A stretch of 64,000 nt of DNA, from the sequence record ON190025.1; one strand, written 5' to 3'. Under the pieces are notes generated by a model. The model saw nothing but the letters and a program-made list of their open reading frames with translations, searched no databases and was not told the origin of the DNA. Shown in pieces: positions 5,954 to 60,100 of the stretch (position 1 is its first letter; the number at the start of each line of letters is the position of its first letter). The position numbers and the translations under genes are program-made.

Positions 5954-6874
5954 TTATTTTCTAATGAAATATGTTTTAGTCGAGGCTTTCCCTTCGACCG
6001 TTTTATATGTGTAATTCGGTAATGTATCAGCATATCGTTTTACTAAACGATTGTATAGTTTTATTCTCGAATCACTGTCGTTTTTTATATCTCGCTCTGC
6101 ACTGAAATAAATTGTTTCTGGCTCTCGCTCGTCTATAAATTCACGCATACCGCTCATTACTGTCGCAAACACACCATACATATTGCCTCGACCTGTTGCG
6201 CTGTAAGTATAATCACCCGAACTGTTCATACCTAAGAACACAAGTTCCCATGCATCGTTTTGTTCTTGATACTGCATTGCAATCGCGTATTCGTCCCCGT
6301 TTACCGTGAACGTACCACCCCAACTGTGAATTCTCTTCTCAACCCAGTGTATTTTAGATGGTCGGTCAAATGCCTCAGTCAAGTTAACTGAAGATAACCA
6401 TTCACGCCATGTCTTCTTATTACCGATCTTGGCAAATGGGATATCGTCATGATCTAGCCACTGAGCCGAGCGGTCATATGACTGAGAAGTATCAAACCCT
6501 CTATAATCATCACCAACCCACAACCATTTGTGATGCCATATTTGGTTTACTTGACGTGGTTTGGAAACAACACCGTCTCTATAAGTAATCATCATACCCG
6601 CGGCTGGTTCTTGTACAGTATCAAATTCAACTGAATCGTAGAAAGCAACTCCACCTTTCTTGTAGTCAATTCGTACTACATTCGGAGTAAATTGTGAGTT
6701 TGCAATTGATACTTGAGTACGAGCATCAGCAACCATTTGCTTGAACTCATCGGGAACATAGTTAATGTGAACATATAATGAACCGCCAATGTCTTTACCC
6801 ACGCCCCACTTGCTGCGTTTTACTGCACTACCTTTTCGAGTTTTCAATGTAGCGCGTTCAAAAATTATGCTCAT
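5954..6874 (-). CDS. Putative internal head protein: Dnd-associated methyltransferase N-domain-like plus Alt-N-like domain
   Basis: N-half VGKDIGGSLYVH...IWHHKWLWV...KIGNKKTW; internal LTE|AFDRP; C-half homologous to ORF 51973; lies in a late operon. Confidence 0.6.
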   Translation of the reverse strand: MSIIFERATLKTRKGSAVKRSKWGVGKDIGGSLYVHINYVPDEFKQMVADARTQVSIANSQFTPNVVRIDYKKGGVAFYDSVEFDTVQEPAAGMMITYRDGVVSKPRQVNQIWHHKWLWVGDDYRGFDTSQSYDRSAQWLDHDDIPFAKIGNKKTWREWLSSVNLTEAFDRPSKIHWVEKRIHSWGGTFTVNGDEYAIAMQYQEQNDAWELVFLGMNSSGDYTYSATGRGNMYGVFATVMSGMREFIDEREPETIYFSAERDIKNDSDSRIKLYNRLVKRYADTLPNYTYKTVEGKASTKTYFIRK

Positions 6875-6876
6875 TA

Positions 6877-7470
6877 TTACCTCGTTGCTGCGTTTGTAAT
6901 ATTGCGAATCATACGAATTGCGTATTCAGTATCGCCAGTCATAGCCGATGACGCTGCTTTATCGACGTAAAATGTGCTATCTTCAATCATGTTCAAGTGA
7001 TGGTAAATCTCACGAAAATCATGACGGTCGTATTCTTTCACATTAAAACGAAACGCACCTGCCTGCTTATCTTCGTCATGAACACGCTTGTATTCATCTA
7101 CGACACGAATCATTTCGGTTGCGTATTTCTTCATTTCCATGTTATCAAGCTTTAAACGCTTTGCAGCTTTCATTACTTCGTCACGAGGACGTTCAAGCTC
7201 GATTACGTCTTTAAGAACATTCAGACTGTGAATTGTGTTCACTGCTGCACGCTCCATTCTTAGCTTATGATCTTCTAGTGACTTATTGTGCTTTCTAAGT
7301 TCACCCGATGCTGTCGCACTCGCGATCAAACCTGCAAACACACCCCAGAAGCCACCTTTGCGCTGCATACGCTTTTTAACTTCACCTTTCGAACCCGATG
7401 TTGCTGCTTTAAATTGAGCCCATCTACCGGTTTGTTTAGCTTTGTCCATTTCTGTTAAAAATTCTATCAT
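6877..7470 (-). CDS. Putative internal head protein (helical, Gly-rich hydrophobic segment)
   Basis: N-terminus MIEFLTE resembles a capsid-targeting sequence; first gene after late promoter 7493-7500. Confidence 0.55.
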   Translation of the reverse strand: MIEFLTEMDKAKQTGRWAQFKAATSGSKGEVKKRMQRKGGFWGVFAGLIASATASGELRKHNKSLEDHKLRMERAAVNTIHSLNVLKDVIELERPRDEVMKAAKRLKLDNMEMKKYATEMIRVVDEYKRVHDEDKQAGAFRFNVKEYDRHDFREIYHHLNMIEDSTFYVDKAASSAMTGDTEYAIRMIRNITNAATR

Positions 7471-7492
7471 TGTTAACCCCTTTGTTTACTAT

Positions 7493-7500
7493 TATTTAGA
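7493..7500 (-). promoter_or_regulatory. Late promoter variant TCTAAATA
   Basis: TATTTAGA on the plus strand, just downstream of terminator 7509-7536 in the direction of transcription. Confidence 0.7.
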
Positions 7501-7508
7501 CGCAAACG

Positions 7509-7536
7509 AAAAAAGGGTGACTTCGGTCACCCTTTT
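7509..7536 (-). terminator. Intrinsic terminator (UUCG-type loop)
   Basis: AAAAAGGGTGAC-TTCG-GTCACCCTTTT. Confidence 0.9.
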
Positions 7537-7548
7537 AAATTGGTTAAT

Positions 7549-8175
7549 TTAACCGTATACTGATTTGATATTGTCGAAAAACGCAGTTGAACCGTGTAGT
7601 TTCGCTACAACATACGATGCATTCTGACGAACAAGTTGTTTAACGTTCAGTTCTTTCAACTGCTCTTTTGACAAGTTCGCGCTATGTACAAGCGTAAGAA
7701 TAGAACGTGCGTGATCTGACAATGCAAGCGTTGAAATATAACGAGCTTGCTGTTTCGGTTCAAGCTTTTTAAATGCATCAACCGCTTGTGGACCCGCAAC
7801 AGCTACTGCACGCCCCAGACCAAGATTGAGAACACGTGTCAATAGAGATTCCATCCCTAATACAGGCTTACGTGGCGACTCGCGTTTTGGCATGAGTACT
7901 TCTAATTTACCGTCACCTTTCAACGTGTATACAGGAATCTCGGTGTGACCGAACGTTTCGAATCGAGTGACCATGATTTCAGGTGCATTCTGAACGTTAG
8001 CTTGAACACGACGACGAAGACGCTCATCATATTCACCGCCATTAAGTGAATATACAATCTCTGCAACTGTCAAGTCACGCTTTTCAAGCAATTGAATTAC
8101 TGCTTTGCGGAAGTTACGACGCTTAGGTGACTCGTTAGTTGCAAGTGCTTTACGTACGATGTCTAAATCTTTCAT
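7549..8175 (-). CDS. Early protein with probable N-terminal winged helix-turn-helix
   Basis: RKAVIQLLEKRDLTVAEIVYSL...RRRVQANV...PVYTL pattern; GAGAG RBS. Confidence 0.55.
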   Translation of the reverse strand: MKDLDIVRKALATNESPKRRNFRKAVIQLLEKRDLTVAEIVYSLNGGEYDERLRRRVQANVQNAPEIMVTRFETFGHTEIPVYTLKGDGKLEVLMPKRESPRKPVLGMESLLTRVLNLGLGRAVAVAGPQAVDAFKKLEPKQQARYISTLALSDHARSILTLVHSANLSKEQLKELNVKQLVRQNASYVVAKLHGSTAFFDNIKSVYG

Positions 8176-8190
8176 AATATATTTCTCTCA

Positions 8191-8457
8191 TTAAATTACG
8201 ATTGGCTCTTGAATAGCCATGAATGTCTTGCCAGTGAATTCTTGATATGCTTCATGAAAGCTGTCAAGTTCATCGTCAACAATTATTTTTTCACCAGTAC
8301 CAAATGAATATAAAATACTGTCATATTTACCTGTTGCAGTATTAAACATCGGTTCAGTTGTGAATTTAACGCCACACGGTGTATAAAACTCTCTAGGTTT
8401 TTCAACAGGAACTTGTACAGCGTTATGTTCAGCAAAAGCTGTTTCGAGTTTGTTCAT
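8191..8457 (-). CDS. Hypothetical early protein
   Basis: 88 aa, first gene after a class I promoter, GAGAG RBS. Confidence 0.75.
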   Translation of the reverse strand: MNKLETAFAEHNAVQVPVEKPREFYTPCGVKFTTEPMFNTATGKYDSILYSFGTGEKIIVDDELDSFHEAYQEFTGKTFMAIQEPIVI

Positions 8458-8523
8458 ATTCTGCTCTCTTAGTTATGTTGTGTTAACGATGACTATAATA
8501 AGCAAAAACATTTGAGTTGTCAA
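8458..8523 (-). promoter_or_regulatory. Class I early promoter
   Basis: TTGACA(8518-8523)-17-TATTAT(8495-8500), then AGTCATCG...AAGAGAGCAGAAT-ATG. Confidence 0.85.
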
Positions 8524-9012
8524 CTACTTTCTTCGCCATCTCTCAAGTTTTTCATCATATTCGCTATGCTTCCATAAGTCGAATACGATTGTACCTCTCT
8601 GAAACCACCAGACCAATGAAATAGTATCATTTAACTTAGGGTCTTTTGGGTTTTTCCCTGAATAAAATTCACTACTAGGGTGTGAGTGATAAATCGACTT
8701 TTTAACTGCGAACTTATACCCACCTTCAGGTTTACCGACTTCTTCTGGCGGGTATAAGTTACCTAGATACGCAACTTGATATACAGTGTTCTTGAATACG
8801 ATTCGACTTGAATCAATATTGAAGAGCAAGTTCTGATATTGAGCAGCATTCGCAGCAATCTTCCACGGGTGCTTCGGTTTCGTTTCTAGTAACTCATCGA
8901 TTTTCGGCTCAGGGATTAGTTTGGCTAGGTTATGATTACCCCACCCCTCTTCAAGTGATAAACTCAGTTCGATACCGTAAAGCGTGTTTTCATATTCATT
9001 AAATCGTAACAT
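8524..9012 (-). CDS. Putative internal head protein with HigB/RelE-like C-terminus
   Basis: MLRFNEY...LSLEE N-terminus; C-terminal YHSH...ISLVWWFQRGTIVFDLWKHSEYD. Confidence 0.45.
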   Translation of the reverse strand: MLRFNEYENTLYGIELSLSLEEGWGNHNLAKLIPEPKIDELLETKPKHPWKIAANAAQYQNLLFNIDSSRIVFKNTVYQVAYLGNLYPPEEVGKPEGGYKFAVKKSIYHSHPSSEFYSGKNPKDPKLNDTISLVWWFQRGTIVFDLWKHSEYDEKLERWRRK

Positions 9013-9015
9013 AAA

Positions 9016-9528
9016 TTACCTCAGATAAATGAAGCTGTTCGAAAGACGGTCGTGAACTAAAAGATGACCATTTCGCTTAACCCAATATTCAATCGTCTTC
9101 AATTCGTGAGAGTCGCGTCGACCTATATTCCAATCATGAATCACATCATGCGCAACTGGCTGATATAGCTCATCACCACGGCGATAAGTAGGCATCCATT
9201 TAGGCTTGAATTCGTCCTTGATTACTAATGTTACGTTTTCATCACCTAAAGGGGCATTAGCAGAAACACCTTCTAATTCTTTCTTAACGTCGTCTGAAAG
9301 CTCTTTGACTACAATCGCGTCCGATTCATCGACTGATTCACAGCGCGTCTCAGACTCGATTACAGAGCATTCTAGTGGTAGTTCTTTAACCTCGCGTAGC
9401 TCGTGTGTGAATAACTCGTCGATCATCTTGCTTTTAGTCAGAGATTTATCAAGTTCGATGTCGTAGTACTCTTTTGCAAATTCTGCAACTACGCGCTTGG
9501 TTTGTTTCTTTAGATATTCTTTAATCAT
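9016..9528 (-). CDS. Inh paralogue
   Basis: EFAKEYYDIELDKSLTKSKM closely matches EFAKEYYGIELDRRKSKGAM of inh (3694); C-terminal KTIEYWVKRNGHLLVHDRLSNSF. Confidence 0.8.
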   Translation of the reverse strand: MIKEYLKKQTKRVVAEFAKEYYDIELDKSLTKSKMIDELFTHELREVKELPLECSVIESETRCESVDESDAIVVKELSDDVKKELEGVSANAPLGDENVTLVIKDEFKPKWMPTYRRGDELYQPVAHDVIHDWNIGRRDSHELKTIEYWVKRNGHLLVHDRLSNSFIYLR

Positions 9529-9537
9529 AGTTTTACC

Positions 9538-9747
9538 TTAGCATTCAATTGTTACCCACACATTTCGATTTAAATCGAAAAATGTAAGTTCATTATCTGC
9601 ACCGTTTTCATTTTTACGTTGTTCTTCTCGATTGCAATCAAGATGTGGTAGATAATGCTTGCATAAAGTCGCGTGATATTTCTTGCCTTTATGCTCAAAC
9701 TTAAAGCAACCATCTTTCATCTTGTAAAACATTTCGTCTCTTGTCAT
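9538..9747 (-). CDS. Small hypothetical protein (SH3/WYL_2-like pattern)
   Basis: GCFKFEHKGKKYHAT...TFFDLNRNVWVT; first gene of a late operon. Confidence 0.5.
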   Translation of the reverse strand: MTRDEMFYKMKDGCFKFEHKGKKYHATLCKHYLPHLDCNREEQRKNENGADNELTFFDLNRNVWVTIEC

Positions 9748-9760
9748 GAATTTAGACCTC

Positions 9761-9786
9761 TATAAATACAGTTATACATATTTAGA
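9761..9786. promoter_or_regulatory. Back-to-back late promoters
   Basis: TATAAATA (+, 9761-9768) before uvsW; TCTAAATA (-, 9779-9786) before the 9747 operon. Confidence 0.75.
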
Positions 9787-9811
9787 CAAAACTCGCATAG
9801 AGAGAAAAATC

Positions 9812-11341
9812 ATGACATGTGACATTAAAATTGAGTACCACGATGAGAGTTATGCGAGAGTCGTAGCCGAGCCAAGCATCACTCACGAAATGATTGACTA
9901 TTTCTCATTTCTAACAGATGGGTACAAATTTAACCCGAAATTTAAAATGGGCATTTGGGATGGCAAAATTCGACTAATGACGTATCAAGGTCTATTGCCA
10001 TACGGTCTAGTCGGACAAGCTAAAGCGTTTGCATCAAATATGATGTATACGATTGAAACCGATCCAATGCTAGATCCGATTGAGAAAATTTCTCGTGAAG
10101 ATTTCGAAGCATGGGTTGAGTCTATTGACATCTACTCAGGGTCGAATAAGATTTCACCGTATTGGTATCAGATGGACTCTGTGTTTCACGGAATTAACAA
10201 CCAACACAGTCTATTGAATCTACCAACATCTGCGGGTAAATCATTAATTCAGTCGCTGATTACTAAATGGTTCTTAGCACAAGAAGAGCACGAACTTCAG
10301 AAAGTATTAGTGATTGTACCTACAACTGCACTTGTCCAGCAAATGCGCGATGACTTCTTAGATTATCGTTTATTCGAACACAACGACATTTATCAGATTC
10401 GTGGTGGGGTTGATCGAGACGCAATCGGTGACTGCCGAATCGTTGTATCTACATGGCAATCTGCTGTAAAACAACCGAAAGAATGGTTTGACCAATTCGG
10501 TATGCTTTTAGTCGATGAGTGTCACTTGGCAACAGGTAAGTCATTAGACGGTATAATCAAGAAAATGACAAACTGTGAATACAAAATCGGTCTTACTGGC
10601 TCACTTCGAGACGGTAAAGCGAATATTCTACAGTACGTTGGTTCATTCGGTGATATTTTCCGACCTGTTTCAACTGCACAGCTAATGGAAGAAGGGCAAG
10701 TAACAGATCTGAAGATAAACTGTTTAATGCTTGAATACCCACAGCCGTTACGTGATGAAATGAAGGGCAGTTCGTATCAAGAAGAAATGAAATTCATTCT
10801 TGAGAACAAGCAGCGAAATCGTTACTTGATTAAGCTTGCGCATCATTTAAGCGCGAAGAAAGGCGAAAATACGTTATTGCTATTCAAGAACATCAAACAC
10901 GGTAAATTGCTTTACGAAGCGTTGAAGAGCGTATATGACCCAGAGAAAGTGTTCTACGTATCTGGTGAAACTAAAACTGACGACCGTACGCATGTTAAGA
11001 AGATTGCAGAAGATATTGACGGGGCTATTATCGTAGCATCGTATGGTGTATTCTCGACTGGTATCAGTATCAAGAAACTACACAACGTAATTTACGCACA
11101 TCCCACAAAATCAAAAATACTCACGCTGCAAAGTATTGGGCGTATTCTTCGTAAGCACGGTTCTAAAGTTACTGCAAAATTGTTTGACATTATTGATAAT
11201 TTGGGTGTCAAGTCAAAGCGCAAGAATGCTAAGAATCCATATAGTCATGTTAACTATACGCTAAAGCATGGCATGGCTCGCATTGAGCTTTACAACCAAG
11301 AGAATTTTCGCTATGCTGTAAAAAAGGTTGACTTGGAATAG
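9812..11341 (+). CDS. uvsW: UvsW DNA helicase (SF2)
   Basis: FSFLTDGYKFNPKFKMGIWDGKIRL, LPTSAGKS, DECH and QSIGRILR motifs. Start moved to 9812 by RBS and T4 alignment. Confidence 0.97.
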   Translation: MTCDIKIEYHDESYARVVAEPSITHEMIDYFSFLTDGYKFNPKFKMGIWDGKIRLMTYQGLLPYGLVGQAKAFASNMMYTIETDPMLDPIEKISREDFEAWVESIDIYSGSNKISPYWYQMDSVFHGINNQHSLLNLPTSAGKSLIQSLITKWFLAQEEHELQKVLVIVPTTALVQQMRDDFLDYRLFEHNDIYQIRGGVDRDAIGDCRIVVSTWQSAVKQPKEWFDQFGMLLVDECHLATGKSLDGIIKKMTNCEYKIGLTGSLRDGKANILQYVGSFGDIFRPVSTAQLMEEGQVTDLKINCLMLEYPQPLRDEMKGSSYQEEMKFILENKQRNRYLIKLAHHLSAKKGENTLLLFKNIKHGKLLYEALKSVYDPEKVFYVSGETKTDDRTHVKKIAEDIDGAIIVASYGVFSTGISIKKLHNVIYAHPTKSKILTLQSIGRILRKHGSKVTAKLFDIIDNLGVKSKRKNAKNPYSHVNYTLKHGMARIELYNQENFRYAVKKVDLE

Positions 11342-11345
11342 CGAA

Positions 11346-13043: not shown

Positions 13044-13453
13044 ACTATACCACTCTCAATTTTTCTGTTGTCAATAATGTGTTTGATTGTGAAGCCCATT
13101 TGACTAATGCCTTTCAAAGCTTCTTCGATGAATGATAACACATCTTTCATGTGTTGAAAAGTAGCAATTGCACGTTGAAGATATTCATCACCCGCAAGAG
13201 CATATTTCATTTCACTCTTTTCTACGATGAAATCACAAACTTCATCGTCATGTTTGCCGCTATAAAAGAGCCAGCGGTCTTTTCTCACAGCTTCCATTTT
13301 CATTTCAGCTTTGATAAGTAGTTGTCTTGCATCGGCTCGGTATGCAAGCCACTTCGCATGAAGAACGGGAATTCGAATAGCTGCTGTTTCTAAAGCAGTT
13401 GTGTCAATTTTCACGTCTTCGTGATATTCAATTTTTAAATCTTGTAGCTTCAT
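13040..13453 (-). CDS. uvsY: UvsY recombination mediator
   Basis: EDVKIDTT-x-LE...LHAKWL...FYSGK...KSEMK...GFTIKHI; 137 aa. Confidence 0.96.
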   Translation of the reverse strand: MKLQDLKIEYHEDVKIDTTALETAAIRIPVLHAKWLAYRADARQLLIKAEMKMEAVRKDRWLFYSGKHDDEVCDFIVEKSEMKYALAGDEYLQRAIATFQHMKDVLSFIEEALKGISQMGFTIKHIIDNRKIESGIV

Positions 13454-13471
13454 AATAACCTCGCGTCATCA

Positions 13472-13624: not shown

Positions 13625-16315
13625 TTTCATTGCAAAGTCGATTGCAGTGAAGTTGTCTTCAAACGAACTAGCAACATTGACTTCAGTAACAATTGGGAAA
13701 GCCCACATTACTTGATTTTCAACGGCTGTTTCATCTTTGTATCGAAGTATCAACTTATCATCATCAGCATTCCATCTAAAAGACTTGTCTGCGTTTGTGG
13801 TGTAATAACCTACACCCTTTGATGTCTGATATGTCGGATCATCTTCTGGGTTTATTACACCGAAATAGTTGTTAAACTTATCAGCAAACGCTTGATGTTG
13901 TGCATCTGTCCAATCATGTGGTAGAATATACCCCTGCAATAAAACCCATTGATTGTTTGAAGCAGGAAACCCGTACACTCTGTCAACATTGATATATGTA
14001 GATGTTCGACTACCGTCTGATAATCTCAGAGTTCTATAGTCACCAGATGAATTCTTGACACGTACACTGAAATATAAGAAGCTATTTTGCTTGTCTATAG
14101 CATTAACCCATAACGATAAGAAGTATGGTCGAGATGGATCGATTGATACTTCTTGCATTTCAATTGGAGATGATGAGCCTGCTGTACGTGTGAAACACTT
14201 TTCACCGCCTGAAAGTACATAATTACCCCATTGAACGTTGTCAATTTCTTGTACTGGCATATTAATACCTGCATACAAGTTTGAATCTGCGTTATATGCT
14301 CGCCACCAGCTATCGTCATCAACTACGTTACCTGTAATCGGTGAATTGACAATCTCTTGAGCAGCGATACCGTTTATGTTCGAAATCATATGAGGTATAC
14401 CACTCGGGGTTGACATTCCGCCTTTAGTCAATATGACGTAATCAAAGTACTCTGGTTGTAAGTCAGACCAAACTCCAAATTTAACTGCACCTGTTGGTAC
14501 TTGTACGAAAAATTCTTGAGTTTCTTTTTTCTCTGCACTGTAAAAATGAATATTCTGTCTGCCTACTTCATCGCCAACTACGTTGTAGAATCGAAGATTC
14601 GCCATTTTGTCTGCATTCGCGATTGCTGAATTTCGATCAATACATGCACGAGCTTTGTAAATCAAGTACTGTCCGTCGATTACACCATAATCTGAAAGAA
14701 GATAACGTTTATCAGTAGGAACAGTCATTGTTTCGAGTAAAGGAATTCCGTACCCGTTTGAACCAATCCCTGCTTTATCTTCGAATGCAGTATCAACAAC
14801 ACTGTCACCGTCAGATTCATGGTCGAACATACAACGATCATATACAATACCTAATTGGCCTGTCCCGAATGCACAGTAACTATAACTGTATTGACTGAAG
14901 TAAGAGCTACCGCGATACTCAATCGGGTGATACTGTTGAATTGCAGCATCTACCGCAGAATCTGCGTACATTGACCCATTTGATAGAATAACAAACGGCT
15001 CTGTTGTTAACCCGTTCAGCCCGTTGATGAAGTTGCTACGTTCTGTAGAACTACTCAGAAGATATTTTCTATTAGTTTTGACTGTCATATCGTCGTTGAA
15101 TATAATCAAACGAACTTGATATTGTTGTTTAGCTTCGGGTGTGAATAGACTAACATCATTCAAATAACATGATGCTAGATTCGAACTACCGTTCGCGACA
15201 CCTGTTGCTAACAGTCTGATATTATTATTTGAAAAATCTCTGATATGTCTAGCCGACACTTCATATTCACCGATTCTTGAACCGACGGGAGCATAAATCC
15301 ATAATTCTGCTATATTTACGTTAATACCCGGTCCCGGGAATGTCGTAGTCGCGTCTGGCCAAGAACGTTTAGCACCGATAGCCCAATACCAATTTGATAT
15401 ATCGACTGAACCATCTGCTAAAGTACTAGCTGAAACGCTGAATTCAATACCACCCCAATCGTTTGCAGTGCTTTCGATGTAAACAGGTTCATAACCCCTA
15501 ACCCCACGAGCGGTAGCATCGTAATCGCCAGTATAGTTCTTGACGATTTGCGAATCCGTGATCATGAAGTTCGTCAACCAACGTTTTCCTGTTGGTAATT
15601 TCCCAGCATCGTTTGTGTAGCAACAATACCAGTACATGCTACTTGACGAAAGAGTACTAGGCGTTGTGAAACGAGCATAGTGACGTTTCCAAAGAATCCC
15701 GTCAACTATTATTTCGTTTCCTGCTGATTCGAACACGTCACCCGCAGTATGTTCGCCTAATGTATAATCATTATTGGAACCGTCATACCAACGAGCGTGA
15801 AATATAGCTGCTGTGTCGTGATCAGCGTCTACTTCATACCCAACCCAACATGACAATGTGTATGTTTTGTTTGGTTTTAAACGCGATTGTGGCACTTGAA
15901 AACGTAATTGGTCTTCTAGTGCCGCAGTCGGTTGCTCAACGACGTATTTTGATGACCCTGGGTTTTCTTTCTCAACAATAACCCAAGAACCGATTTTTGC
16001 ATTTTGTTCAGTGACGTATTCCCCACCCGCTAAGTTACCGTTTGTAAGATATTGACCTACATCAATAGCTGCAAAGTTACTACTTTGCTTCCAGATGTTT
16101 GTTACATCCAATTCTGGGTAATGAAGCTTGAATTGGAATTTGCCGTCTTCACGGCGAAATTCCTCAAGTGAGTTCAACGCACTGAATTTTTGTTCAACGT
16201 CGGGATTTGTCCCGACGCTGCGTGCTTCAGCATCGGAGGTGAAAAACACACCTCCTGTTGAATCATGGCGAAAGATTAATAGCCAATCGCCGTCACGTTT
16301 AAGTCTTTCGTACAT
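13622..16315 (-). CDS. 35: Long tail fibre hinge gp35, expanded with extra domains
   Basis: Central region matches T4 gp35 (LSDYGVIDGQYLIYKA...NLRFYN...VQVPTGAVKF...GGMS...NGI); follows gp34. Confidence 0.85.
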   Translation of the reverse strand: MYERLKRDGDWLLIFRHDSTGGVFFTSDAEARSVGTNPDVEQKFSALNSLEEFRREDGKFQFKLHYPELDVTNIWKQSSNFAAIDVGQYLTNGNLAGGEYVTEQNAKIGSWVIVEKENPGSSKYVVEQPTAALEDQLRFQVPQSRLKPNKTYTLSCWVGYEVDADHDTAAIFHARWYDGSNNDYTLGEHTAGDVFESAGNEIIVDGILWKRHYARFTTPSTLSSSSMYWYCCYTNDAGKLPTGKRWLTNFMITDSQIVKNYTGDYDATARGVRGYEPVYIESTANDWGGIEFSVSASTLADGSVDISNWYWAIGAKRSWPDATTTFPGPGINVNIAELWIYAPVGSRIGEYEVSARHIRDFSNNNIRLLATGVANGSSNLASCYLNDVSLFTPEAKQQYQVRLIIFNDDMTVKTNRKYLLSSSTERSNFINGLNGLTTEPFVILSNGSMYADSAVDAAIQQYHPIEYRGSSYFSQYSYSYCAFGTGQLGIVYDRCMFDHESDGDSVVDTAFEDKAGIGSNGYGIPLLETMTVPTDKRYLLSDYGVIDGQYLIYKARACIDRNSAIANADKMANLRFYNVVGDEVGRQNIHFYSAEKKETQEFFVQVPTGAVKFGVWSDLQPEYFDYVILTKGGMSTPSGIPHMISNINGIAAQEIVNSPITGNVVDDDSWWRAYNADSNLYAGINMPVQEIDNVQWGNYVLSGGEKCFTRTAGSSSPIEMQEVSIDPSRPYFLSLWVNAIDKQNSFLYFSVRVKNSSGDYRTLRLSDGSRTSTYINVDRVYGFPASNNQWVLLQGYILPHDWTDAQHQAFADKFNNYFGVINPEDDPTYQTSKGVGYYTTNADKSFRWNADDDKLILRYKDETAVENQVMWAFPIVTEVNVASSFEDNFTAIDFAMK

Positions 16316-23314: not shown

Positions 23315-23860
23315 ATGAAAGTTCAAATCGTTTTCGCTCACGGTATGAGTAAATCCCCGCACGCGCCCTTCGGCAATCAAAACAAACTCCCTTGGAAACA
23401 TAACAAAGAAGACTTGGCTCGATTTAAAGCAGTTACTATGAATAGCGTGCTTGTAATGGGCTCTAAGACATTCGAATCACTTCCCGGTAAACTAGCAGGC
23501 CGCCCGCACGTTGTGCTCAGTAGCAGCGATACAGCGACTGCAAAAAACGGTCAAAAAGCCGATGTTTACTGCAAGTGTGACTCCTTTCAAGACCTGATTA
23601 AAAACATCGAAAATGTTTATCTGATAGAAGGTTTTGATAAAATAAGTGTTATCGGTGGCCCTAGTGTTATCGAGTCTGCATTACCTTTTGCAGACCACAT
23701 ATATAAAACTACAATCGTTGATGAAATCGAAGCGTACGACGTTACGATTGATTTAACTAAAATTTTCTGGTATTTCCCACACAACGGGGAATCAGAGATC
23801 GTCGAATGCCAGAACGGCTCTACGATTTTCATCGAAAAGTTAACAAAGGGTGACTTATGA
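23315..23860 (+). CDS. frd: Dihydrofolate reductase
   Basis: LPWKH-x-KEDL, VMGSKTFESLP and VIGGP motifs. Confidence 0.95.
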   Translation: MKVQIVFAHGMSKSPHAPFGNQNKLPWKHNKEDLARFKAVTMNSVLVMGSKTFESLPGKLAGRPHVVLSSSDTATAKNGQKADVYCKCDSFQDLIKNIENVYLIEGFDKISVIGGPSVIESALPFADHIYKTTIVDEIEAYDVTIDLTKIFWYFPHNGESEIVECQNGSTIFIEKLTKGDL

Positions 23861-24573
23861 TTTTTAAAAATAACATTGGATGGTACGCAGGGGCTGGTTC
23901 TGTACGTCATGATTTCTACATCAACGGTGCGATTGAAGAGCCGAATGATTATGAAGAAATGCTTCAAATTCTGCATACGGCGTCCGAAACAGACGTGATT
24001 TACTTGCACTTGAATACACCTGGTGGTAACTTCTATGCTGCATGTCAAATTTGTGATGCAATTATGCAATCTAAAGCAGGTGCAGTCATCGCGTGCGCAG
24101 AGGGTGAAGTGTGCAGCGCAGGTACAATGATTTTCTTAGCTTGTAATGGTTGGCACGTATCCCCATTTGCAACGTTCATGTTCCATACATCGAGCGGCGG
24201 TCAAATTGGTAAAATGCCAGACACGTTGAAACAAGCTAAATCTCACGAAGAGCATTTAAACCGCGTATGTGGTCTTCTTTATGAACCGTTCTTTGATGCT
24301 GACGAGATCGACGAAATCATCAACCATAACCAAGACTTATGGCTGACGCCAGAAGAGGTTACAGAACGTCTTCAAGAAATGTCGAAGAAGTTCGAAGATG
24401 AAATGAAAGAAGCTGAAGCTCAACTTGCAGGTGACATTGAATCTCAACTTGAAGAACAGATTCAAGAGCGCGTAGCTGAAGAGCTTCGCAAACTAAAGGT
24501 CGACCCTGAAGATGAAGAAGTTGAAGATGAGCCCGTAAAGCCAAAACGCAAGCGTGCTGCAAAGAAAGCTTAA
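23857..24573 (+). CDS. ClpP-like serine protease (S14)
   Basis: LHLNTPGG, CSAGTMIF (Ser) and FMFH (His); acidic coiled C-tail. Confidence 0.85.
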   Translation: MIFKNNIGWYAGAGSVRHDFYINGAIEEPNDYEEMLQILHTASETDVIYLHLNTPGGNFYAACQICDAIMQSKAGAVIACAEGEVCSAGTMIFLACNGWHVSPFATFMFHTSSGGQIGKMPDTLKQAKSHEEHLNRVCGLLYEPFFDADEIDEIINHNQDLWLTPEEVTERLQEMSKKFEDEMKEAEAQLAGDIESQLEEQIQERVAEELRKLKVDPEDEEVEDEPVKPKRKRAAKKA

Positions 24574-38097: not shown

Positions 38098-38301
38098 ATG
38101 AAATCTAAAGGTTTTACTCTGATCGAATTGATTGTTTTGATTGCGATTCTAGGGATTCTAGCGTCGGTAGCTGCTGGTACGTTGTTTGGGGCTGAACAAC
38201 CTACATCTTACAGTACTCAACCGCAATCAGAGACTTATGAAATTGACGGTCAGTTAATGCAATGTACTCCCGTGCAAGCAGTATGGGACGATGATTTTTA
38301 A
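38098..38301 (+). CDS. Type IV prepilin-like small protein
   Basis: MKSKG|FTLIELIVLIAILGILASVA class III signal peptide with Glu+5. Confidence 0.88.
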   Translation: MKSKGFTLIELIVLIAILGILASVAAGTLFGAEQPTSYSTQPQSETYEIDGQLMQCTPVQAVWDDDF

Positions 38302-46108: not shown

Positions 46109-46287
46109 TTACAGCAAAAGAGGCAAGAGCAAAGCGGAAGAAACTTTCGCCTGCTGTTGAGAAGTCGCGAGTTGACTTCAAAACAGAAAAATTGACTGAA
46201 AGTGAGCGCGATACTATTCGTAGTATTTTGATTAGTCTCGGCTATGATGCGTTCATTACAGGTGAGAAACTTGAGGTGATGTGGTAA
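46105..46287 (+). CDS. Small hypothetical protein (local paralogue family)
   Basis: MITAKEAR...LGY...EVMW. Confidence 0.7.
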   Translation: MITAKEARAKRKKLSPAVEKSRVDFKTEKLTESERDTIRSILISLGYDAFITGEKLEVMW

Positions 46288-46502
46288 TGAGCAATTTCAT
46301 TCGAATTCTAGAAGATATGTGTCGCGAGTTTCGCGGCGAACTGAACGAAGCAGCGACAGCCGAGGTAGATTATTACCTCGTGCAGCTTTACGTCGCTATG
46401 CTATCACTAGGTTTCGGCGTACAGATTGCGATTTACATTTTGTTTTATGTCATTTTTTATCTACCAATGACCGTAATTGGTAAGCTACTAGGGATTAAAT
46501 AA
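46287..46502 (+). CDS. Small membrane protein
   Basis: Hydrophobic C-half; TAATG coupling. Confidence 0.7.
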   Translation: MSNFIRILEDMCREFRGELNEAATAEVDYYLVQLYVAMLSLGFGVQIAIYILFYVIFYLPMTVIGKLLGIK

Positions 46503-51914: not shown

Positions 51915-51948
51915 AAAGGGGGCTTATGCCCCTTTTTGCGTATAAATA
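51915..51948 (+). promoter_or_regulatory. Terminator followed by late promoter TATAAATA
   Basis: Hairpin 51915-51937; TATAAATA at 51941-51948. Confidence 0.85.
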
Positions 51949-54515: not shown

Positions 54516-54546
54516 TTTATAGACTCACCCTTTAGAAATATATGTG

Positions 54547-54554
54547 TATTTATG
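54547..54554 (-). promoter_or_regulatory. Late promoter variant CATAAATA
   Basis: TATTTATG on the plus strand, 31 nt upstream of the alt-like ATG. Confidence 0.55.
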
Positions 54555-54605
54555 ATTGCTCATAACACCCGTTGAAATTATTTTAAACTTTTTGTCAGAA
54601 AAAGG

Positions 54606-54673
54606 TTGCACGAAAAACAATATAGACCTAATATAGCTTCATCGAAACGAATTAACGAACAGAGAGAATAATT
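54606..54673 (+). promoter_or_regulatory. Class I early promoter with leader
   Basis: TTGCAC-17-TAATAT, CATCGAAACGA, AGAGAGAATAATT-ATG. Confidence 0.85.
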
Positions 54674-55177
54674 ATGAATGTACAATCACTGACTAACGAA
54701 CAACTTGCTGCTTACTTCAACATGACAGTAGACTCAAACGGTTTTCAAGCTGTTGATGAGAAAGGTCGTCGTCATTATTTAACAGACCTTCGTCAGAAAG
54801 CAATGAAATCTGCTAAGACGAAGAAAGCACGTAAAGTACGCGCTGAAGCACAGCCTAAAGCAACTGCTGAAGAACTACTTGCAGAACTACAAAGCGAGTC
54901 TTCAGATTTTTGGGAGATTCGAGAATCTCAGCCTGGTATGGACTCTGAAGAGCACGGTCTAAATGTATACGTGACTACTGGACTGCCTGATAGTCATCGC
55001 GTAATGATTCGTTCTAGTGTATTATCAAATAAGGAACTTGATCGCGAACTTGGACATCTAAACCCAGCAAAGCATAAAGAAGTACAGCGACGCAAAAAAT
55101 CGACAATCATATTTTCGAATCGTTCAGCGAAAGAAATCGTTGAAATTATCGAAAAAGTGAAGTCAATTAGTGAATAA
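54674..55177 (+). CDS. Early protein, possible MotA C-terminal (double-wing)-like DNA-binding domain
   Basis: Basic linker KKARKVR; C-terminal IFSNRSAKEIVEII resembles T4 MotA LDIKRSAENIEAVI. Confidence 0.4.
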   Translation: MNVQSLTNEQLAAYFNMTVDSNGFQAVDEKGRRHYLTDLRQKAMKSAKTKKARKVRAEAQPKATAEELLAELQSESSDFWEIRESQPGMDSEEHGLNVYVTTGLPDSHRVMIRSSVLSNKELDRELGHLNPAKHKEVQRRKKSTIIFSNRSAKEIVEIIEKVKSISE

Positions 55178-55208
55178 TTTGAAATAATTCACGAAAAAAG
55201 TAGTTTTA

Positions 55209-55285
55209 GGGATTGACAATAACACGTCAATCCCCGATAATAAACACATCAAGACGAGATACGAACTACTTAAAGAGAGAACATT
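55209..55285 (+). promoter_or_regulatory. Class I early promoter with 9-bp inverted repeat
   Basis: TTGACA-17-GATAAT; GGGATTGAC/GTCAATCCC; CATCAAGACGA and AAGAGAGAACATT leader. Confidence 0.85.
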
Positions 55286-56113
55286 ATGACAATCACTAAA
55301 GCAGAAATGAAAGCTATCGCAATCGACCTTATGTCTGGTAACAACTTGATGAAGCGCGATCTGATTGCAGAAGGTTGGTCATTTGAATTTTCAAAACGTA
55401 AAGCTGCACTAGGTGATTGTAACTACCGTACTAAAACGCTACGTATTTCTGAAGAATTCTTGAACGCTCGTACTAAAGAAGAGCAAATCAACACAATCAC
55501 TCACGAAATGGCTCATGCGATTGCTTACACTGATTACAACGAACGTGGTCACGGTGCTATCTGGAAGCGTGTACACCGTCAACTAGGTGGCGATGCAAAG
55601 CGTTGCTCAACTGTATCTAACCCTGATGCTGTAGATAGCAAGTACGTTGTTTTCTTCGAAAACGCTCAAGGTGAACTTGAAGTAGTTCAGAAAATGGATC
55701 GTTTGACTAAGCGTTTTCAACCAGTACACATCAAGGCTCTATACTTGAAAGGTCGTAAAGCTGAAACTGAAGGTCAACTTCGTTGCGTTGCAACATCAAC
55801 ATTCAACGCTATCAAAGCAGATCACGAAGCTAAGAAAGCTGAAAATACTAAAGCAGTTGAACCTGTAGCAGCACCTGCACCGAAAGCTGAAAAGAAAGCT
55901 GAAGCGCCTAAGCCTGCTAAGAAAGTAAACGCACGTGGTCAAGCTGCTCGTGACGCAATCGCAGAAATCGTAATGAATACTACTCACAAAGGTTGTAAGT
56001 CAGTGTCATTTGAACAGCGTGGTAAATACAAAGATTGGTACATCATTATTGAACTAGAAGCTCACACAATCGAAAAGCGTCTAGACACTTTCAAAAAATC
56101 TCACGGTTTATAA
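55286..56113 (+). CDS. SprT-like zinc metalloprotease
   Basis: ALGDC...RISE, HEMAH, GHGAIWK...GG...C; Ala/Lys/Pro linker. Confidence 0.85.
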   Translation: MTITKAEMKAIAIDLMSGNNLMKRDLIAEGWSFEFSKRKAALGDCNYRTKTLRISEEFLNARTKEEQINTITHEMAHAIAYTDYNERGHGAIWKRVHRQLGGDAKRCSTVSNPDAVDSKYVVFFENAQGELEVVQKMDRLTKRFQPVHIKALYLKGRKAETEGQLRCVATSTFNAIKADHEAKKAENTKAVEPVAAPAPKAEKKAEAPKPAKKVNARGQAARDAIAEIVMNTTHKGCKSVSFEQRGKYKDWYIIIELEAHTIEKRLDTFKKSHGL

Positions 56114-56131
56114 CATTGTTGTTCTCTTTAT

Positions 56132-56153
56132 AGCCCCGAAAGGGGCTTTTTTT
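56132..56153 (+). terminator. Intrinsic terminator
   Basis: AGCCCC-GAAA-GGGGC-T7. Confidence 0.92.
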
Positions 56154-56160
56154 GGTTTGA

Positions 56161-56221
56161 GCGGAAAAATTCCGTCTCATCTTAGTAGTATTAGTGCTTT
56201 TAGTAATATTAGAAGTATTAG
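56161..56221. repeat. Second copy (inverted) of the 61-bp 9-mer array element
   Basis: Reverse complement equals 13512-13572 with one mismatch. Confidence 0.95.
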
Positions 56222-56229
56222 TAAGATTT

Positions 56230-56259
56230 GTTTAATAACCACCTTGGCAGACGTATAAT
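56230..56259 (+). promoter_or_regulatory. Class II promoter
   Basis: GTTTAA-18-TATAAT. Confidence 0.7.
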
Positions 56260-56277
56260 ATAGGTCGAGGTGAAGAA

Positions 56278-56517
56278 ATGATAACGATATACACAATTCC
56301 CAACTGTGACGGCTGTCGTCACGCAATTTCCCTCTGTAAGTTCAAAAACGTCCCGTACACTGTAATAGAGTTACAGTCTCAATCTGATATCGATAAATTG
56401 CATGAGAAACTTGGTGGGGTGCGCAACATTCGCGTGCCTCTTGCTATGCATGGTGATACATACATAGGTCATCTTCCAGAACTCAAGCAATGGGTTGATA
56501 ACCAGACATATAAATAA
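56278..56517 (+). CDS. Glutaredoxin (NrdC/NrdH-like)
   Basis: IYTIPNCDGC, RVPLAM and YIG motifs. Confidence 0.85.
   Translation: MITIYTIPNCDGCRHAISLCKFKNVPYTVIELQSQSDIDKLHEKLGGVRNIRVPLAMHGDTYIGHLPELKQWVDNQTYK
56509..56516 (+). promoter_or_regulatory. Late promoter TATAAATA
   Basis: Upstream of gp24. Confidence 0.85.
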
Positions 56518-56572
56518 AAGAAAATAACATTCTCTCCGCTGAAATGCGGCAATAAATTAAAGGAATCATACA

Positions 56573-57469
56573 ATGACTGTATCTAATAGTAACGGTTTAC
56601 CAGACATTGTTTCTGTTCAAAAACGACTATACCCGTTAATATTTACGCAAATCGTTTCAGAACAGCCAACAACTCAACCGGTTGCGACTGCATTCGGTTT
56701 CAAATCTGTAGCTGAAGCTGATGACGCGAGTGGGTGGCTTCCCCATGGTTTCAGACTTGATCGCTGGTATGCACAAGTTCAATCATCAAAGCTAAAAACT
56801 GAAATCTCTCTTGAAACAATTCAAGATATGCAAGCACTTGGTGTCAATGAATCGATTATCACAGATTCTATTGCTGACCAAATCGCAGATGACATCAACA
56901 CTAATATCATCGACTCACTAAACAGCATTTCAACTGTTGGTTCTGCATTGACATTAGCAGGTACAAATGACTTTGAAAAGGGTCAAGATTTATACGCTAA
57001 AGTTCACGTGGCTGCTGCTGAAATTGAAAAAACAACTGGCTGTCAAGCTACATATGTTGTGGCTGGTGGCGACTGTTTCGGTCTTTTAACAGGTTGTGGT
57101 GTTGTTCAGCGAATCGGTGATACAAACGTATATAAAGCATGGTCTGGGTTATACATCGTTCATGACAAGTATGCAACGACTGACTACGTAACAATTGGTG
57201 TTAAGAAAGATCTTGGTGATTATGAAATCTCAAGTTTAGTATTCAGCCCATACAACTTTGACAAAGCAACAGACGCTGGTATTGCATATCAATATAAAAC
57301 ACAAGACCCGCAATCATTCCACCCGATTTACGGTGTTATTGCTCGATACGCATTGACCGTTGCACCATTAGAAGACAATCAAACGGGTGCAGTTGAAATC
57401 GATTGGGATAATCTTGGTGTTCTTGCGAACAGTTCTAAGCTGTCATACACTCACGCAGTAACGGTATAA
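56573..57469 (+). CDS. 24: Capsid vertex protein gp24-like
   Basis: EQPTTQPVA, QSSKLKTEISLETIQD and VFSPY; gp23/24 fold motifs; 298 aa. Confidence 0.85.
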   Translation: MTVSNSNGLPDIVSVQKRLYPLIFTQIVSEQPTTQPVATAFGFKSVAEADDASGWLPHGFRLDRWYAQVQSSKLKTEISLETIQDMQALGVNESIITDSIADQIADDINTNIIDSLNSISTVGSALTLAGTNDFEKGQDLYAKVHVAAAEIEKTTGCQATYVVAGGDCFGLLTGCGVVQRIGDTNVYKAWSGLYIVHDKYATTDYVTIGVKKDLGDYEISSLVFSPYNFDKATDAGIAYQYKTQDPQSFHPIYGVIARYALTVAPLEDNQTGAVEIDWDNLGVLANSSKLSYTHAVTV

Positions 57470-57477
57470 GGTGTGAC

Positions 57478-57990
57478 ATGAAAAATCATTATGTAGATAA
57501 TAAAGCTCTGTACGCATCGTTGTGCGAATGGAAAAACGAAATGAAGAAACACCCTGATGCTGCAATTCCCGTCCCTGACGTGGTAGCAATCAGCATCATG
57601 AAGATCAGCGAGAATTTATCTCGCCGTTACAATTTTAGTGGGTATACTGCAACATGGAAAGAAGAGATGATTGGTGACGCAATCGAACATTGCTTGCGCT
57701 ATATCAAGAACTTCGACACTGACAAGTATAACAACCCACACGCTTATATCACTCGTATTTGCTTCAATGCGTTTGTACAACGTATTAAGAAAGAAAGAAA
57801 AGATACAGCGATTAAATATAAAGTATTCTTATGTGATTCGTCTAACTACTCGATTGATGGTGAAGAAACTGATTTCGATTTTCTTCAACAGATGTTAGAA
57901 CGTGTCAATTCTTACGAATCTGGCAAGACTGCTAAAGCTCAACCAGATGAACAGAAAGAACCACTTAACTTACAGAAATTTTACGATTAA
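57478..57990 (+). CDS. 55: Late sigma factor gp55
   Basis: YVDNK, NFSGYT-x-TWKEEMIGDA, NFD-x-x-KY-x-NPHAYIT and AFVQRIKKE motifs. Confidence 0.97.
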   Translation: MKNHYVDNKALYASLCEWKNEMKKHPDAAIPVPDVVAISIMKISENLSRRYNFSGYTATWKEEMIGDAIEHCLRYIKNFDTDKYNNPHAYITRICFNAFVQRIKKERKDTAIKYKVFLCDSSNYSIDGEETDFDFLQQMLERVNSYESGKTAKAQPDEQKEPLNLQKFYD

Positions 57991-57999
57991 GGAATTAAC

Positions 58000-59445
58000 A
58001 TGTTAGGTAACTTTGACTCATTTCTGAGTGAAAATCGCCGTCAAACTCAGGGTGGTAAAATCTACCCTAAGTTTGGTCAAGTTATTGTTGAGCTAGGCAC
58101 TGCATCTACTGAGTTCAGCAAAGGCAAAGGCGTTGAAACAACTATCGGCATGATGGAAAAGGCAAATGAGCTTAAATCTATCATGAGTACTAAACTTGCT
58201 GAAGATAAAAACGTCGATGAGAAAAACTTCGATATTAATCTGAGCGAGAACGTAAGCACAATCAACTTGCTTATGGAAAACGAATTCTTATCATTGCCAG
58301 CACATGAGCTACAGCAAGTTAAGTCTATGATCATGTGTACTGAAGCTCGTCTTCCTAGCATCGTGATTAAAGGCGGTTACTTAGATCAGGTTGTTGCCGA
58401 AGCGACTAAGCTTGGTTATAAGAAAAATGACATTCACGTTGTTTTCCCTATGCGTGAAATGAAAATTAATCTTGCTGATTCTGATAAGCTTGTAATTGAA
58501 TCGCTATCAATTGATGACAATTCAGCATCTGAAATACTGTCAATGGCTGAAAACATCGAGCTTGGTGACGTTTATGTGACTGTTGAATCGGTTGATTCAA
58601 AAGCCGAACTGTCTGACATCACTGAGATGAAAATCAAGTCTGGTAAAAATGCACTTACATTGGCTGCACTGAACCGTAAAATCATGGACTTGTTCATTGT
58701 AAAAGAAGCGAAAGACGTATCATACGCTCGTGAACGTAAAGACGATACTGGCTTGCCGATGCTAGAAGGATTCAAAGCATACGATCTGAAACAGAACATC
58801 ACCATGATTGAACATGCTCAGAACGTTTTCACGAAAGAAATCGCGACTGCGCCACTGACATCGACTGCATGGCAAAATCTTGTTGATGTGAAAGAAGCGT
58901 ATTTTGACAACGGTTGGAAGCTGAAACACAACAACACAAGTATTGTTCTAACAAACGCGGAACATGCTATGCGTGCAGGTCGTGTGTGTGAAGAATATCG
59001 CGTTGAATTATCTGAAGCAGGTTACCCGCTTCTTGATATGATTGCGATGATGGAACGTAAAGGCGTGAAACGTTTTGACTGTAAAGCATTTGCTGAAGCT
59101 ATGCTATCGTTCGATGGTTGTGTTACCCCTGAGCGTCAAACAGTGACTGCATTTTCAACAATGGCTGAGTCGAATCGTGTATTCCACCCGAATATCATGT
59201 CTAGTCTACGTCCAGTGACTGAAATGGTTGATGATGTTGATTCACTGATTCGTGCTCTTGCAAATGATCAGTTCAGTTCATTCAAGGTTGGTCAATCTTT
59301 CTCTGAAGCGATGCTTGATCAAGAAACACTTTACTCGATGATGGAAAACATCGTTGAAAACGGCGTTGACGTTTCGGTTGACGGTACTTTGATTGAGTTC
59401 AGCGTTAACGCAACGAACTATCTGATTGATATTGATATTAAGTAG
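58000..59445 (+). CDS. Putative internal head protein with degenerate P-loop kinase-like N-domain
   Basis: MLGNFDSFLSE; GGKIYPKFGQV, LPSIVI and LGYKKNDIHVVF motifs; Walker A degenerate. Confidence 0.5.
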   Translation: MLGNFDSFLSENRRQTQGGKIYPKFGQVIVELGTASTEFSKGKGVETTIGMMEKANELKSIMSTKLAEDKNVDEKNFDINLSENVSTINLLMENEFLSLPAHELQQVKSMIMCTEARLPSIVIKGGYLDQVVAEATKLGYKKNDIHVVFPMREMKINLADSDKLVIESLSIDDNSASEILSMAENIELGDVYVTVESVDSKAELSDITEMKIKSGKNALTLAALNRKIMDLFIVKEAKDVSYARERKDDTGLPMLEGFKAYDLKQNITMIEHAQNVFTKEIATAPLTSTAWQNLVDVKEAYFDNGWKLKHNNTSIVLTNAEHAMRAGRVCEEYRVELSEAGYPLLDMIAMMERKGVKRFDCKAFAEAMLSFDGCVTPERQTVTAFSTMAESNRVFHPNIMSSLRPVTEMVDDVDSLIRALANDQFSSFKVGQSFSEAMLDQETLYSMMENIVENGVDVSVDGTLIEFSVNATNYLIDIDIK

Positions 59446-59452
59446 GTGCACA

Positions 59453-60100
59453 ATGAAGAAATTTGGTGAATTTTTAACTGAAGTACAAAAGTACAGTTCC
59501 GCAGCAACGTCGATACGTGGTAAAGAAGTAGCAGCACTGGTTAAACTATACAAGAAAGGTATGTTTACACCGGGTGGTACTGCTCTTGACTATGGTGCTG
59601 GTAAATACGGTCGTAACGCTGAATTTTTACGCTCTGAAGGCATCAAAACGTATGCATATGACAAATTCAATGGTACATCTGCTGATGGTTGGACTGATGT
59701 CAGTCTGACTATCCCAAATGGGGAATCATTCGATACGGCGTTTACTTCTTACGTACTGAACGTTGTACCTGAAGAAGTCGAAGCAGAGATTATTCGTGAT
59801 GTTGAGTCTCGTGCTCGTGGTAAAGTTTTCCATATCACTCGCGGTACTGACATTACTCAAACTGTGTTGAACGTGATCAGTGGTAAAAGCAAAAACGATA
59901 TCATGATGCAATTCATTGCTCAAGAATATCCAGATCTGTCTATGCAGATTGAAGCAGGTAATGCAACAAGAGACGTGGCTAAAGAAATTGCTACTCGCGG
60001 TGTAGTTACAGCGAAAGACAGCTTTCAACGTATTCCAGACCTTTCAAAGTACGGTTACAAGAAATCTGGTTCAGGTGCTTCGGTAGTTTGGACAAAATAA
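59453..60100 (+). CDS. Class I SAM-dependent methyltransferase with capsid-targeting N-terminus
   Basis: MKKFGEFLTE; LDYGAGKYG (motif I), AYD, FDTAFTSYVLNVV; AGGTG RBS. Confidence 0.88.
   Translation: MKKFGEFLTEVQKYSSAATSIRGKEVAALVKLYKKGMFTPGGTALDYGAGKYGRNAEFLRSEGIKTYAYDKFNGTSADGWTDVSLTIPNGESFDTAFTSYVLNVVPEEVEAEIIRDVESRARGKVFHITRGTDITQTVLNVISGKSKNDIMMQFIAQEYPDLSMQIEAGNATRDVAKEIATRGVVTAKDSFQRIPDLSKYGYKKSGSGASVVWTK

Follow-up and report, generated by a model that had tools for sequence, protein, structure and literature searches.

Vibrio phage PVA23, a Schizotequatrovirus of 247 kb that belongs to the KVP40 group, probably loads a mixed set of proteins into its head in the manner of phage T4, by means of short cleavable leaders. 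This reading applies to at least five of eight proteins encoded in a 64,000-nucleotide stretch of DNA (hereafter the window), which is 100% identical to positions 124001-188000 of the PVA23 record (ON190025.1). It is based on the presence of homologs in virions of a related phage, on conservation of the leaders and on the protease motif in gp23, the major capsid protein, from which targeting, exact cuts and ejection are inferred. By analogy with the internal proteins of T4 and with Alt, each cargo protein would carry an N-terminal propeptide of 5-12 residues (about 22 in one case), ending in aliphatic-x-Glu, that binds the scaffolding core during prohead building. A gp21-type prohead protease would then cut after the Glu, and the mature protein would remain in the DNA-filled head and exit with the DNA. 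The proposed cargo is mixed and comprises an Alt-type ADP-ribosyltransferase, a protein resembling S-adenosylmethionine (SAM)-dependent methyltransferases, DUF6934 modules and small basic proteins or domains. The T4 internal proteins, among them a blocker of a restriction enzyme, are textbook examples of proteins delivered along with the DNA of a phage. In T4, such a system belongs to textbook knowledge; KVP40-like phages appear not to have been credited with members of it before in the literature searched, in which a review of the T4 head was the only paper found to link KVP40-like phages with a capsid targeting sequence.

The eight proteins and their leaders

An initial annotation of the window had listed eight reading frames as late proteins bearing capsid targeting sequences. 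All eight, N-termini included, were found where it had placed them, and each start is preceded by a Shine-Dalgarno-like sequence. They are designated P1 to P8 in map order. P1 (5954..6874, minus strand) has 306 residues in two modules and the leader MSIIFE; P2 (6877..7470, minus strand; 197 residues) is basic, with an isoelectric point of 9.6 and the leader MIEFLTE. P3 (8524..9012, minus strand; 162 residues) has a longer leader, in which a conserved aliphatic-x-Glu ends at residue 20-22. P4 (46520..46786, plus strand; 88 residues) is acidic and has LNE ending at residue 12, and P5 (51973..52854, plus strand; 293 residues), also acidic, has two leader sites, ending at residues 5 and 12. P6 (52887..54515, minus strand; 542 residues) is the Alt-like ADP-ribosyltransferase, with the leader MIGFQQLNE. 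The acidic P7 (58000..59445, plus strand; 478-481 residues) has a leader-like N-terminus and the basic P8 (59453..60100, plus strand; 215 residues) starts with MKKFGEFLTE. In GenBank, the P2 gene (PVA23_193) starts at window position 7449, which drops the seven-residue leader; the ribosome-binding site belongs to the ATG at 7470 and backs that start.

Homologs in the virions of a related phage

The virion proteome of the Schizotequatrovirus 6E35-1a comprises 94 proteins (Table S4 of PMC12028318, 2025), and the gene table with PHROG numbers is given in Table S8 of the same paper, in which the homologs of the proteins discussed here are labeled hypothetical. The eight proteins were matched to this list via PHROG families and reciprocal best hits to the near-identical genome of 6E35-1b. 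Seven of the eight have homologs among the virion proteins, and the chance of at least seven of eight at the background of 94/440 is 1.3e-4. Spectral counts in the two replicates are 122/233 for the homolog of P6 (VP6E351A_0095), 31/79 for that of P8 (_0103), 16/61 for that of P5 (_0094), 21/34 for that of P2 (_0019), 17/14 for that of P3 (_0022), 9/14 for that of P1 (_0018) and 3/0 for that of P4 (_0082). Counts per residue for P6, P8, P5, P2 and P3 amount to 0.22-0.73 of the value for the portal, as against 0.12 or less for replication and metabolic enzymes, and P4, at 0.04, lies at the lower end of this contaminant range. In the congener, detection is clear for the homologs of P6, P8, P5, P2 and P3, borderline for that of P1 and weak for that of P4; the homolog of P7, dealt with below, is absent. 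A literature search found no second virion proteome for the KVP40-like group.

It could be argued that the mass-spectrometry signal stems from abundant cytoplasmic proteins of the late phase, carried over in a lysate that was precipitated with polyethylene glycol. NAMPT, GTP cyclohydrolase and dUTPase do appear in the preparation, with 0.04-0.05 counts per residue, a value shared by P1. The signals of P6, P8, P5, P2 and P3, however, are 2-8 times that range in both replicates, and carry-over would leave unexplained the association of detection with conserved leader sites that is described below. We consider carry-over a highly improbable explanation for the set.

Leader sites, their conservation and the prohead protease

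The prohead protease of T4 recognizes the motif L/I-x-E, and its leaders comprise 10-19 residues, or 6-7 in the case of Alt (PMC9026906, PMC5694885). In P1 to P8, in this order, an aliphatic-x-Glu site ends at residues 6, 7, 22, 12, 5 and 12, 9, 11, and 10, and the site is conserved in the orthologs of seven of the eight, P4 being the exception. Seven phages retain the leader of P2, even at an overall identity as low as 37%, with an exchange between Leu and Ile as the sole change. In P3, a conserved EWGNHN stretch follows the leader site, and the mature part is basic. The N-terminus of P7 is conserved in 11/11 aligned sequences (its own and those of ten homologs that are as little as 38% identical), and the sequence beyond the leader-like end is equally conserved in the same 11 sequences. 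In AlphaFold models, the leaders are disordered (residues 1-12 of P8 and 1-6 of P5).

A reference substrate for the protease is provided by gp23 (909..2453, plus strand). It aligns with the mature T4 gp23* chains from residue 63/64, and therefore a cut is predicted after the LNE at residues 60-62 (codon 62 is at 1092-1094). The earlier proposal that gp23 of this phage is processed at LNE is thus borne out by homology. A gp21-type prohead protease is encoded just upstream of the window (its homolog is listed as Peptidase_S77 in Table S8), and PVA23 gp21 itself has such a site at residue 8.

The predictive value of the leader was examined in two ways. A crude regular expression ("Met, early Phe, then site"), written before the sister phage was looked at, did not significantly classify virion detection in that phage (7/19 vs 81/388, p = 0.09). 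The stricter test covered the orthologous pairs of PVA23 and 6E35-1b genome-wide, with tail genes excluded, and compared pairs in which the site is conserved at the aligned position with the remaining pairs. Proteins with a conserved leader site were detected in virions in 19/44 cases, compared with 27/207 for the others (odds ratio 5.1, p = 1.7e-5); when five or more counts were required in each of the two replicates, detection fell to 15/44 and 13/207 (odds ratio 7.7, p = 3.4e-6). By these results, the idea of a conserved leader has genuine predictive value.

Two kinds of leader and their exchange

Leaders for comparison were read from Yersinia phage PST (KF208315), a close relative of T4 whose accession was obtained via PMC4122927. 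The PST proteins IpIII, IpIV and IpVI have ten-residue leaders ending in ITE or IAE, and in IpV the site is at residue 15. The leader of P8 shares 6/10 residues with that of IpIV and likewise with that of IpVI, and the leader of P7 matches the PST internal-protein leaders loosely. P1, P2, P5 and P6 have a second, shorter kind of leader, which comprises 5-9 residues and starts with Met-Ile or Met-Ser-Ile. T4 Alt is cut at ITE-6 and LTE-619 (PMC5694885), and the short leaders of these four proteins look more like the 6-residue propeptide of Alt.

A still closer match to the PST leaders (8/10 residues) is found outside the window, in an 80-residue open reading frame (ORF) of the tRNA cluster (record positions 78605-78847). 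This ORF adjoins a 57B-like/57A/dNMP-kinase block, which is the map position of ipV and ipVI in PST, and the 6E35 counterparts of the leader-bearing ORFs in the tRNA cluster were detected in virions. Further small leader-bearing ORFs of the tRNA cluster were noted at 13214-13468 and 14163-14411 of the sequence L012.

In phage D479, the ortholog of P1 (L017, 4091-4618) carries the leader of P2 on the conserved mature part. The P1 orthologs of D479 and of phage 1.081.O (L018, 4094-4606) consist of the N-domain alone, without the DUF6934 module; their ends coincide with the site that in PVA23 stands before the second module. From these alignments, the leaders behave as modules.

Late promoters

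The initial annotation had placed most of the eight genes downstream of late promoters, which applies to four of them. The exact T4-type octamer TATAAATA (51941..51948, plus strand) lies 32 nucleotides before P5, after a terminator hairpin. P2, P4 and P6 are preceded at 26-39 nucleotides by one- or two-base variants of the octamer: TCTAAATA (7493..7500, minus strand) is situated 30 nucleotides before P2, just after a terminator-like hairpin, ATTAAATA (46494-46501) is at -26 of P4, and CATAAATA (54547-54554) is at -39 of P6. Late-promoter-like elements are enriched in the set (4/8 vs 40/388 genome-wide, p = 0.006). The exact TATAAATA occurs in 16 copies in the whole 247-kb record, 11 of them within 100 nucleotides upstream of ORFs, and the ORFs so preceded include gp23, gp24, the tail sheath, fibritin, a baseplate gene and P5.

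Points against head loading and the role of chance

Several observations weigh against head loading by leaders. The proteomic data come from a congener rather than from PVA23, with orthologs 46-80% identical; the 6E35-1a particles were purified by polyethylene glycol precipitation only, and ssb, dUTPase, thymidylate synthase and ligase are present at low counts in the same preparation. The P7 homolog (_0102) is not among the virion proteins of Table S4 (zero counts), and P1, at 0.08 of the portal per residue, falls within the contaminant range. The LNE of P4 is not kept in 6E35-1b. P1, P3, P7 and P8 are operon-internal, with no late-promoter element of their own. The bare motif ending by residue 20 is found in 95/388 PVA23 ORFs (24%). 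Furthermore, 25/44 of the ORFs with a conserved site are undetected in virions; these include ribonucleotide reductase, gp41, gp44 and DNA polymerase, and several are plainly not head proteins. For P7 there are three readings: no packaging, presence in very few copies, or degradation as a core protein. Both P4 and P7 may fall outside the packaged set.

The base rate of the motif is also a ground for regarding the leaders as chance matches on ordinary intracellular phage proteins, and the performance of the crude regular expression, the many replication proteins with conserved sites, the missing P7 and the weak P4 point in the same direction. The claim that these N-termini are capsid targeting sequences stands insofar as a site is present in all eight, but the motif alone does not exceed chance. 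Chance matches, on the other hand, would hardly account for the seven of eight homologs in the virion list or for the enrichment of conserved sites among detected proteins (p ~1e-5). Nor would they explain the persistence of leaders in proteins that otherwise diverge, a leader swapped between neighboring genes, or the likeness to the leaders of PST. An origin of the whole set by chance therefore has very little probability.

Alt and a methyltransferase-like protein

The assignment of P6 as an Alt-like ADP-ribosyltransferase is confirmed by a PF03496 match above the cut-off (24.2 bits vs 23.4, residues 317-495) and by a match to PHROG 802 at 1.2e-88, while a sequence search against solved structures gave nothing significant. 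P6 resembles T4 Alt in belonging to the Alt PHROG and the ADP-ribosyltransferase Pfam family, in adjoining the DNA ligase gene, in its short leader (LNE, residue 9) and in the abundance of its homolog in virions. It differs in its length of 542 residues and in that the PHROG match is limited to the C-terminal half. T4 Alt acts after ejection (PMC9026906). The initial annotation had suggested host takeover as a function of the eight; by homology this is supported for Alt, and the support is limited to it. The Alt proteins of PVA23 and 6E35-1b have aliphatic-x-Glu sites in common only at residues 9 and 167, and an internal site of P1 is likewise at residue 167.

P8 has no Pfam match itself; among its 233 homologs, many match PF13489 (Methyltransf_23) and one is named SAM-dependent methyltransferase. 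Its model (predicted local distance difference test score, pLDDT, of 89) gave 144 PDB matches at E <= 1e-3 with template modeling (TM) scores of 0.4-0.52, and the top 50 are all methyltransferases. A stretch with invariant D46, G48, A49 and G50, in the manner of a glycine-rich SAM loop, is also present. P8 is thus predicted from the model to have a Rossmann-type, class I SAM-methyltransferase-like fold. Distant metagenomic homologs of P8 also start with short leaders ending in aliphatic-x-Glu. DarB of the Dar system of phage P1 is a methyltransferase-helicase. P8 would be another head-packaged methyltransferase-fold protein delivered with the DNA; it differs in being a single domain of 215 residues and in its T4-type leader route, and the two are likened by concept, not homology. 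The Dar system is made up of head-packaged anti-restriction proteins (PMC9024508, PMC12810830).

DUF6934 modules as possible head cargo

P5 consists of a leader, a DUF6934-like N-domain and a beta-rich C-domain. P1 has a basic N-domain of no known fold and an internal aliphatic-x-Glu site at residue 167, with a DUF6934-like module at about residues 164-303. A single family unites P5 with the C-terminal half of P1 and two more PVA23 genes, and in its alignment the Glu at the predicted cut is invariant. Scored directly against DUF6934 (PF22028), P1 stays below the cut-off of 27 bits, at 23.3, and P5 gives no match; of the relatives aligned with the P5 family, 26/49 match DUF6934. With the profile of the P5 family, a full HMMER scan retrieved 1,677 clusters at E <= 1e-3, many of which are large proteins with 2-5 copies of a module of ~130 residues. 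These multi-copy proteins score above the DUF6934 cut-off of Pfam, and GNAT domains are present as well in two of them.

The modules were counted in the 148 best representatives, which contain 288 copies, 269 of them aligning at the cut-site column. The column of P5 Glu-12 is Glu in 269/269 module copies, and the residue two positions before it is Leu in 124, Ile in 78 and Val in 48 of 261 (250/261). N-terminal copies, behind leaders of 5-19 residues, number 88, and 181 are internal. Each module is preceded by a site of the T4-protease type, which suggests release by cleavage. Tentatively, DUF6934 may be a widespread cargo module of T4-like heads, bounded by prohead-protease sites. The multi-copy proteins would then be polyproteins, processed inside the capsid by the prohead protease to release each module singly, and the single-copy forms would comprise P5, the second half of P1, the other two family genes of PVA23 and, perhaps, the N-terminal part of Alt. 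A tblastn search with a three-copy protein against isolated phages retrieved Vibrio T4-like phages only, and the contigs with multi-copy genes are too short to reveal a nearby gp21-type protease. In three metagenome contigs (L021, L022 and L023), neighbors of the multi-copy genes also have short aliphatic-x-Glu leaders, like head-cargo islands. In the literature searched, DUF6934 is mentioned in a single, unrelated paper.

The model of P5 (pLDDT 91) matches nothing in the PDB significantly; GNAT folds come nearest, at E 8.6e-3 and weaker (for AcrVA5, TM is 0.52-0.54), and the P5 profile found nothing among PDB sequences. As none of these fold matches reaches E <= 1e-3, the notion of DUF6934 as a GNAT enzyme was rejected and the resemblance is treated as a hint only. 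In a viral structure library, the fold of P5 was found in proteins named zeta-toxin-domain, ParB and deaminase, and more weakly in Alt (Foldseek E of 2.6e-3 to 1.2e-2). That the N-terminus of Alt is itself a DUF6934 module was not substantiated (hmmsearch E of 0.06-0.08 in two phages, hhalign not significant) and is kept as a lead only.

Assembly components or cargo

The window starts with the scaffold and major capsid genes, followed by uvsW and tail-fiber genes; a replication block (gp32, uvsX, gp41, nrdD, primase, td, topoisomerase, ligase) occupies the middle, and alt, gp24, gp55 and gp47/46 are at the end. P1 to P3 are flanked by two paralogs annotated as prohead protease inhibitor (3694-4182, plus strand, and 9016-9528, minus strand), and homologs of both are not in the 6E35-1a virion list. 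This arrangement allows the view that the eight are head proteins, but assembly parts (core, scaffold or size-determining) or DNA-condensing proteins, some of which are processed and partly expelled. P1 to P3 are indeed situated between gp23 and uvsW among the inhibitor paralogs, and P7 and P8 follow gp24 and gp55. In the congener, gp22, gp67 and gp68 have N-terminal sites of the same kind and low counts. P2, P3 and P8 share their basic character with DNA-associated proteins, and the acidic P7 could be a degraded core protein. However, Alt is an enzyme whose T4 counterpart acts after ejection, P8 has an enzyme fold, and DUF6934 modules share proteins with GNAT domains. Proteins with the P5 fold bear names (zeta-toxin-domain, ParB, deaminase, ADP-ribosyltransferase) that fit cargo better than scaffold. 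On balance, a role in assembly or DNA condensation is unlikely to explain the set, although it has a better claim than chance or carry-over.

Proteins without assignment and anti-defense

No family, structure or defense-system match was obtained for P2, P3 and P7 or for the P1 N-domain. Sequence searches of solved structures with P2, P3 and the P1 N-domain, and with profiles of P7, P8 and P5, gave nothing significant. Across the eight, Pfam returned nothing beyond the Alt ADP-ribosyltransferase domain and sub-threshold matches to DUF6934 (P1) and SAC3 (P4). A scan of IMG/VR with P2 found two loci only, both in known phages. A membrane role for P2 was considered and rejected, as no segment reaches transmembrane-like hydrophobicity. 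The eight had also been proposed as injected anti-defense proteins; this claim found no support, with PADLOC and NCBIfam giving no match for any of them. An anti-defense role of the set is possible.

Relation to other head-delivered proteins

Like the internal proteins of T4 and PST, the PVA23 proteins have short N-terminal leaders ending in aliphatic-x-Glu, their homologs occur in virions, and their mature parts are unrelated to one another. In contrast to T4 and PST, where the genes form one or two islands, those of PVA23 are spread over at least six loci. Several PVA23 members are large (200-540 residues) with enzyme folds, half of the set has the shorter leader of the Alt kind (5-9 residues), and outside the leader none of the sequences resembles a T4 internal protein.

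In the giant phages phiKZ, 201phi2-1 and SPN3US, propeptides of ejection proteins are cut after Glu (PMC5694885, PMC9026906). A head-internal location and processing after Glu by a gp21-related protease would be common to both groups, as predicted for PVA23, whereas the giant-phage propeptides mostly exceed 100 residues, have the motif S/A-x-E and belong to unrelated proteins. Polyvalent and MuF-fused effectors are packaged in heads as well (PMC5512222, PMC9503650). The occurrence of DUF6934 in 2-5 copies per protein, some with GNAT, and of the P5 fold in proteins with toxin or ADP-ribosyltransferase names is reminiscent of these effectors; the differences are that a MuF domain is absent and that a T4-protease-type site precedes each DUF6934 module.

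Further leader-bearing proteins and other genes

A leader of the same kind is present in about ten more virion-detected proteins of unknown function, as read from the N-termini of 6E35-1b. The count of "at least eight" in the initial annotation is accordingly an undercount for the genome, and an overcount for the listed eight, with P7 absent and P4 weak. A further candidate in the window is PVA23_253 (46287..46502, plus strand; 71 residues), which has a conserved LNE ending at residue 21 and whose homolog (_0081) has counts of 7/6. Outside the window, further members are encoded at record positions 203522-204973, 207024-208079, 211469-213266 and 234085-234642, together with the small ORFs of the tRNA region.

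Some other features were noted in passing. A 67-residue ORF (window positions 38098-38301, plus strand) has a type IV prepilin-like leader followed by a hydrophobic helix and is conserved in 6E35-1b. The replication block contains a ClpP-like protease gene (23857-24573, plus strand), whose homolog has counts of 2/7 in the virion proteome. In 6E35-1b (L008 and L011), nrdD is annotated in three pieces, and primase and the homolog of VP6E351A_0357 in two each.

Implications for marine vibriophages

Recognition of the leader offers a sequence-based way to pick probable head cargo in a large group of marine vibriophages. For the mining of such genomes it matters that the leader alone is a poor classifier, which has to be paired with conservation or proteomics in order to work. 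Recognition of the leader also provides a first context for DUF6934 and for a widespread family of methyltransferase-like phage proteins.

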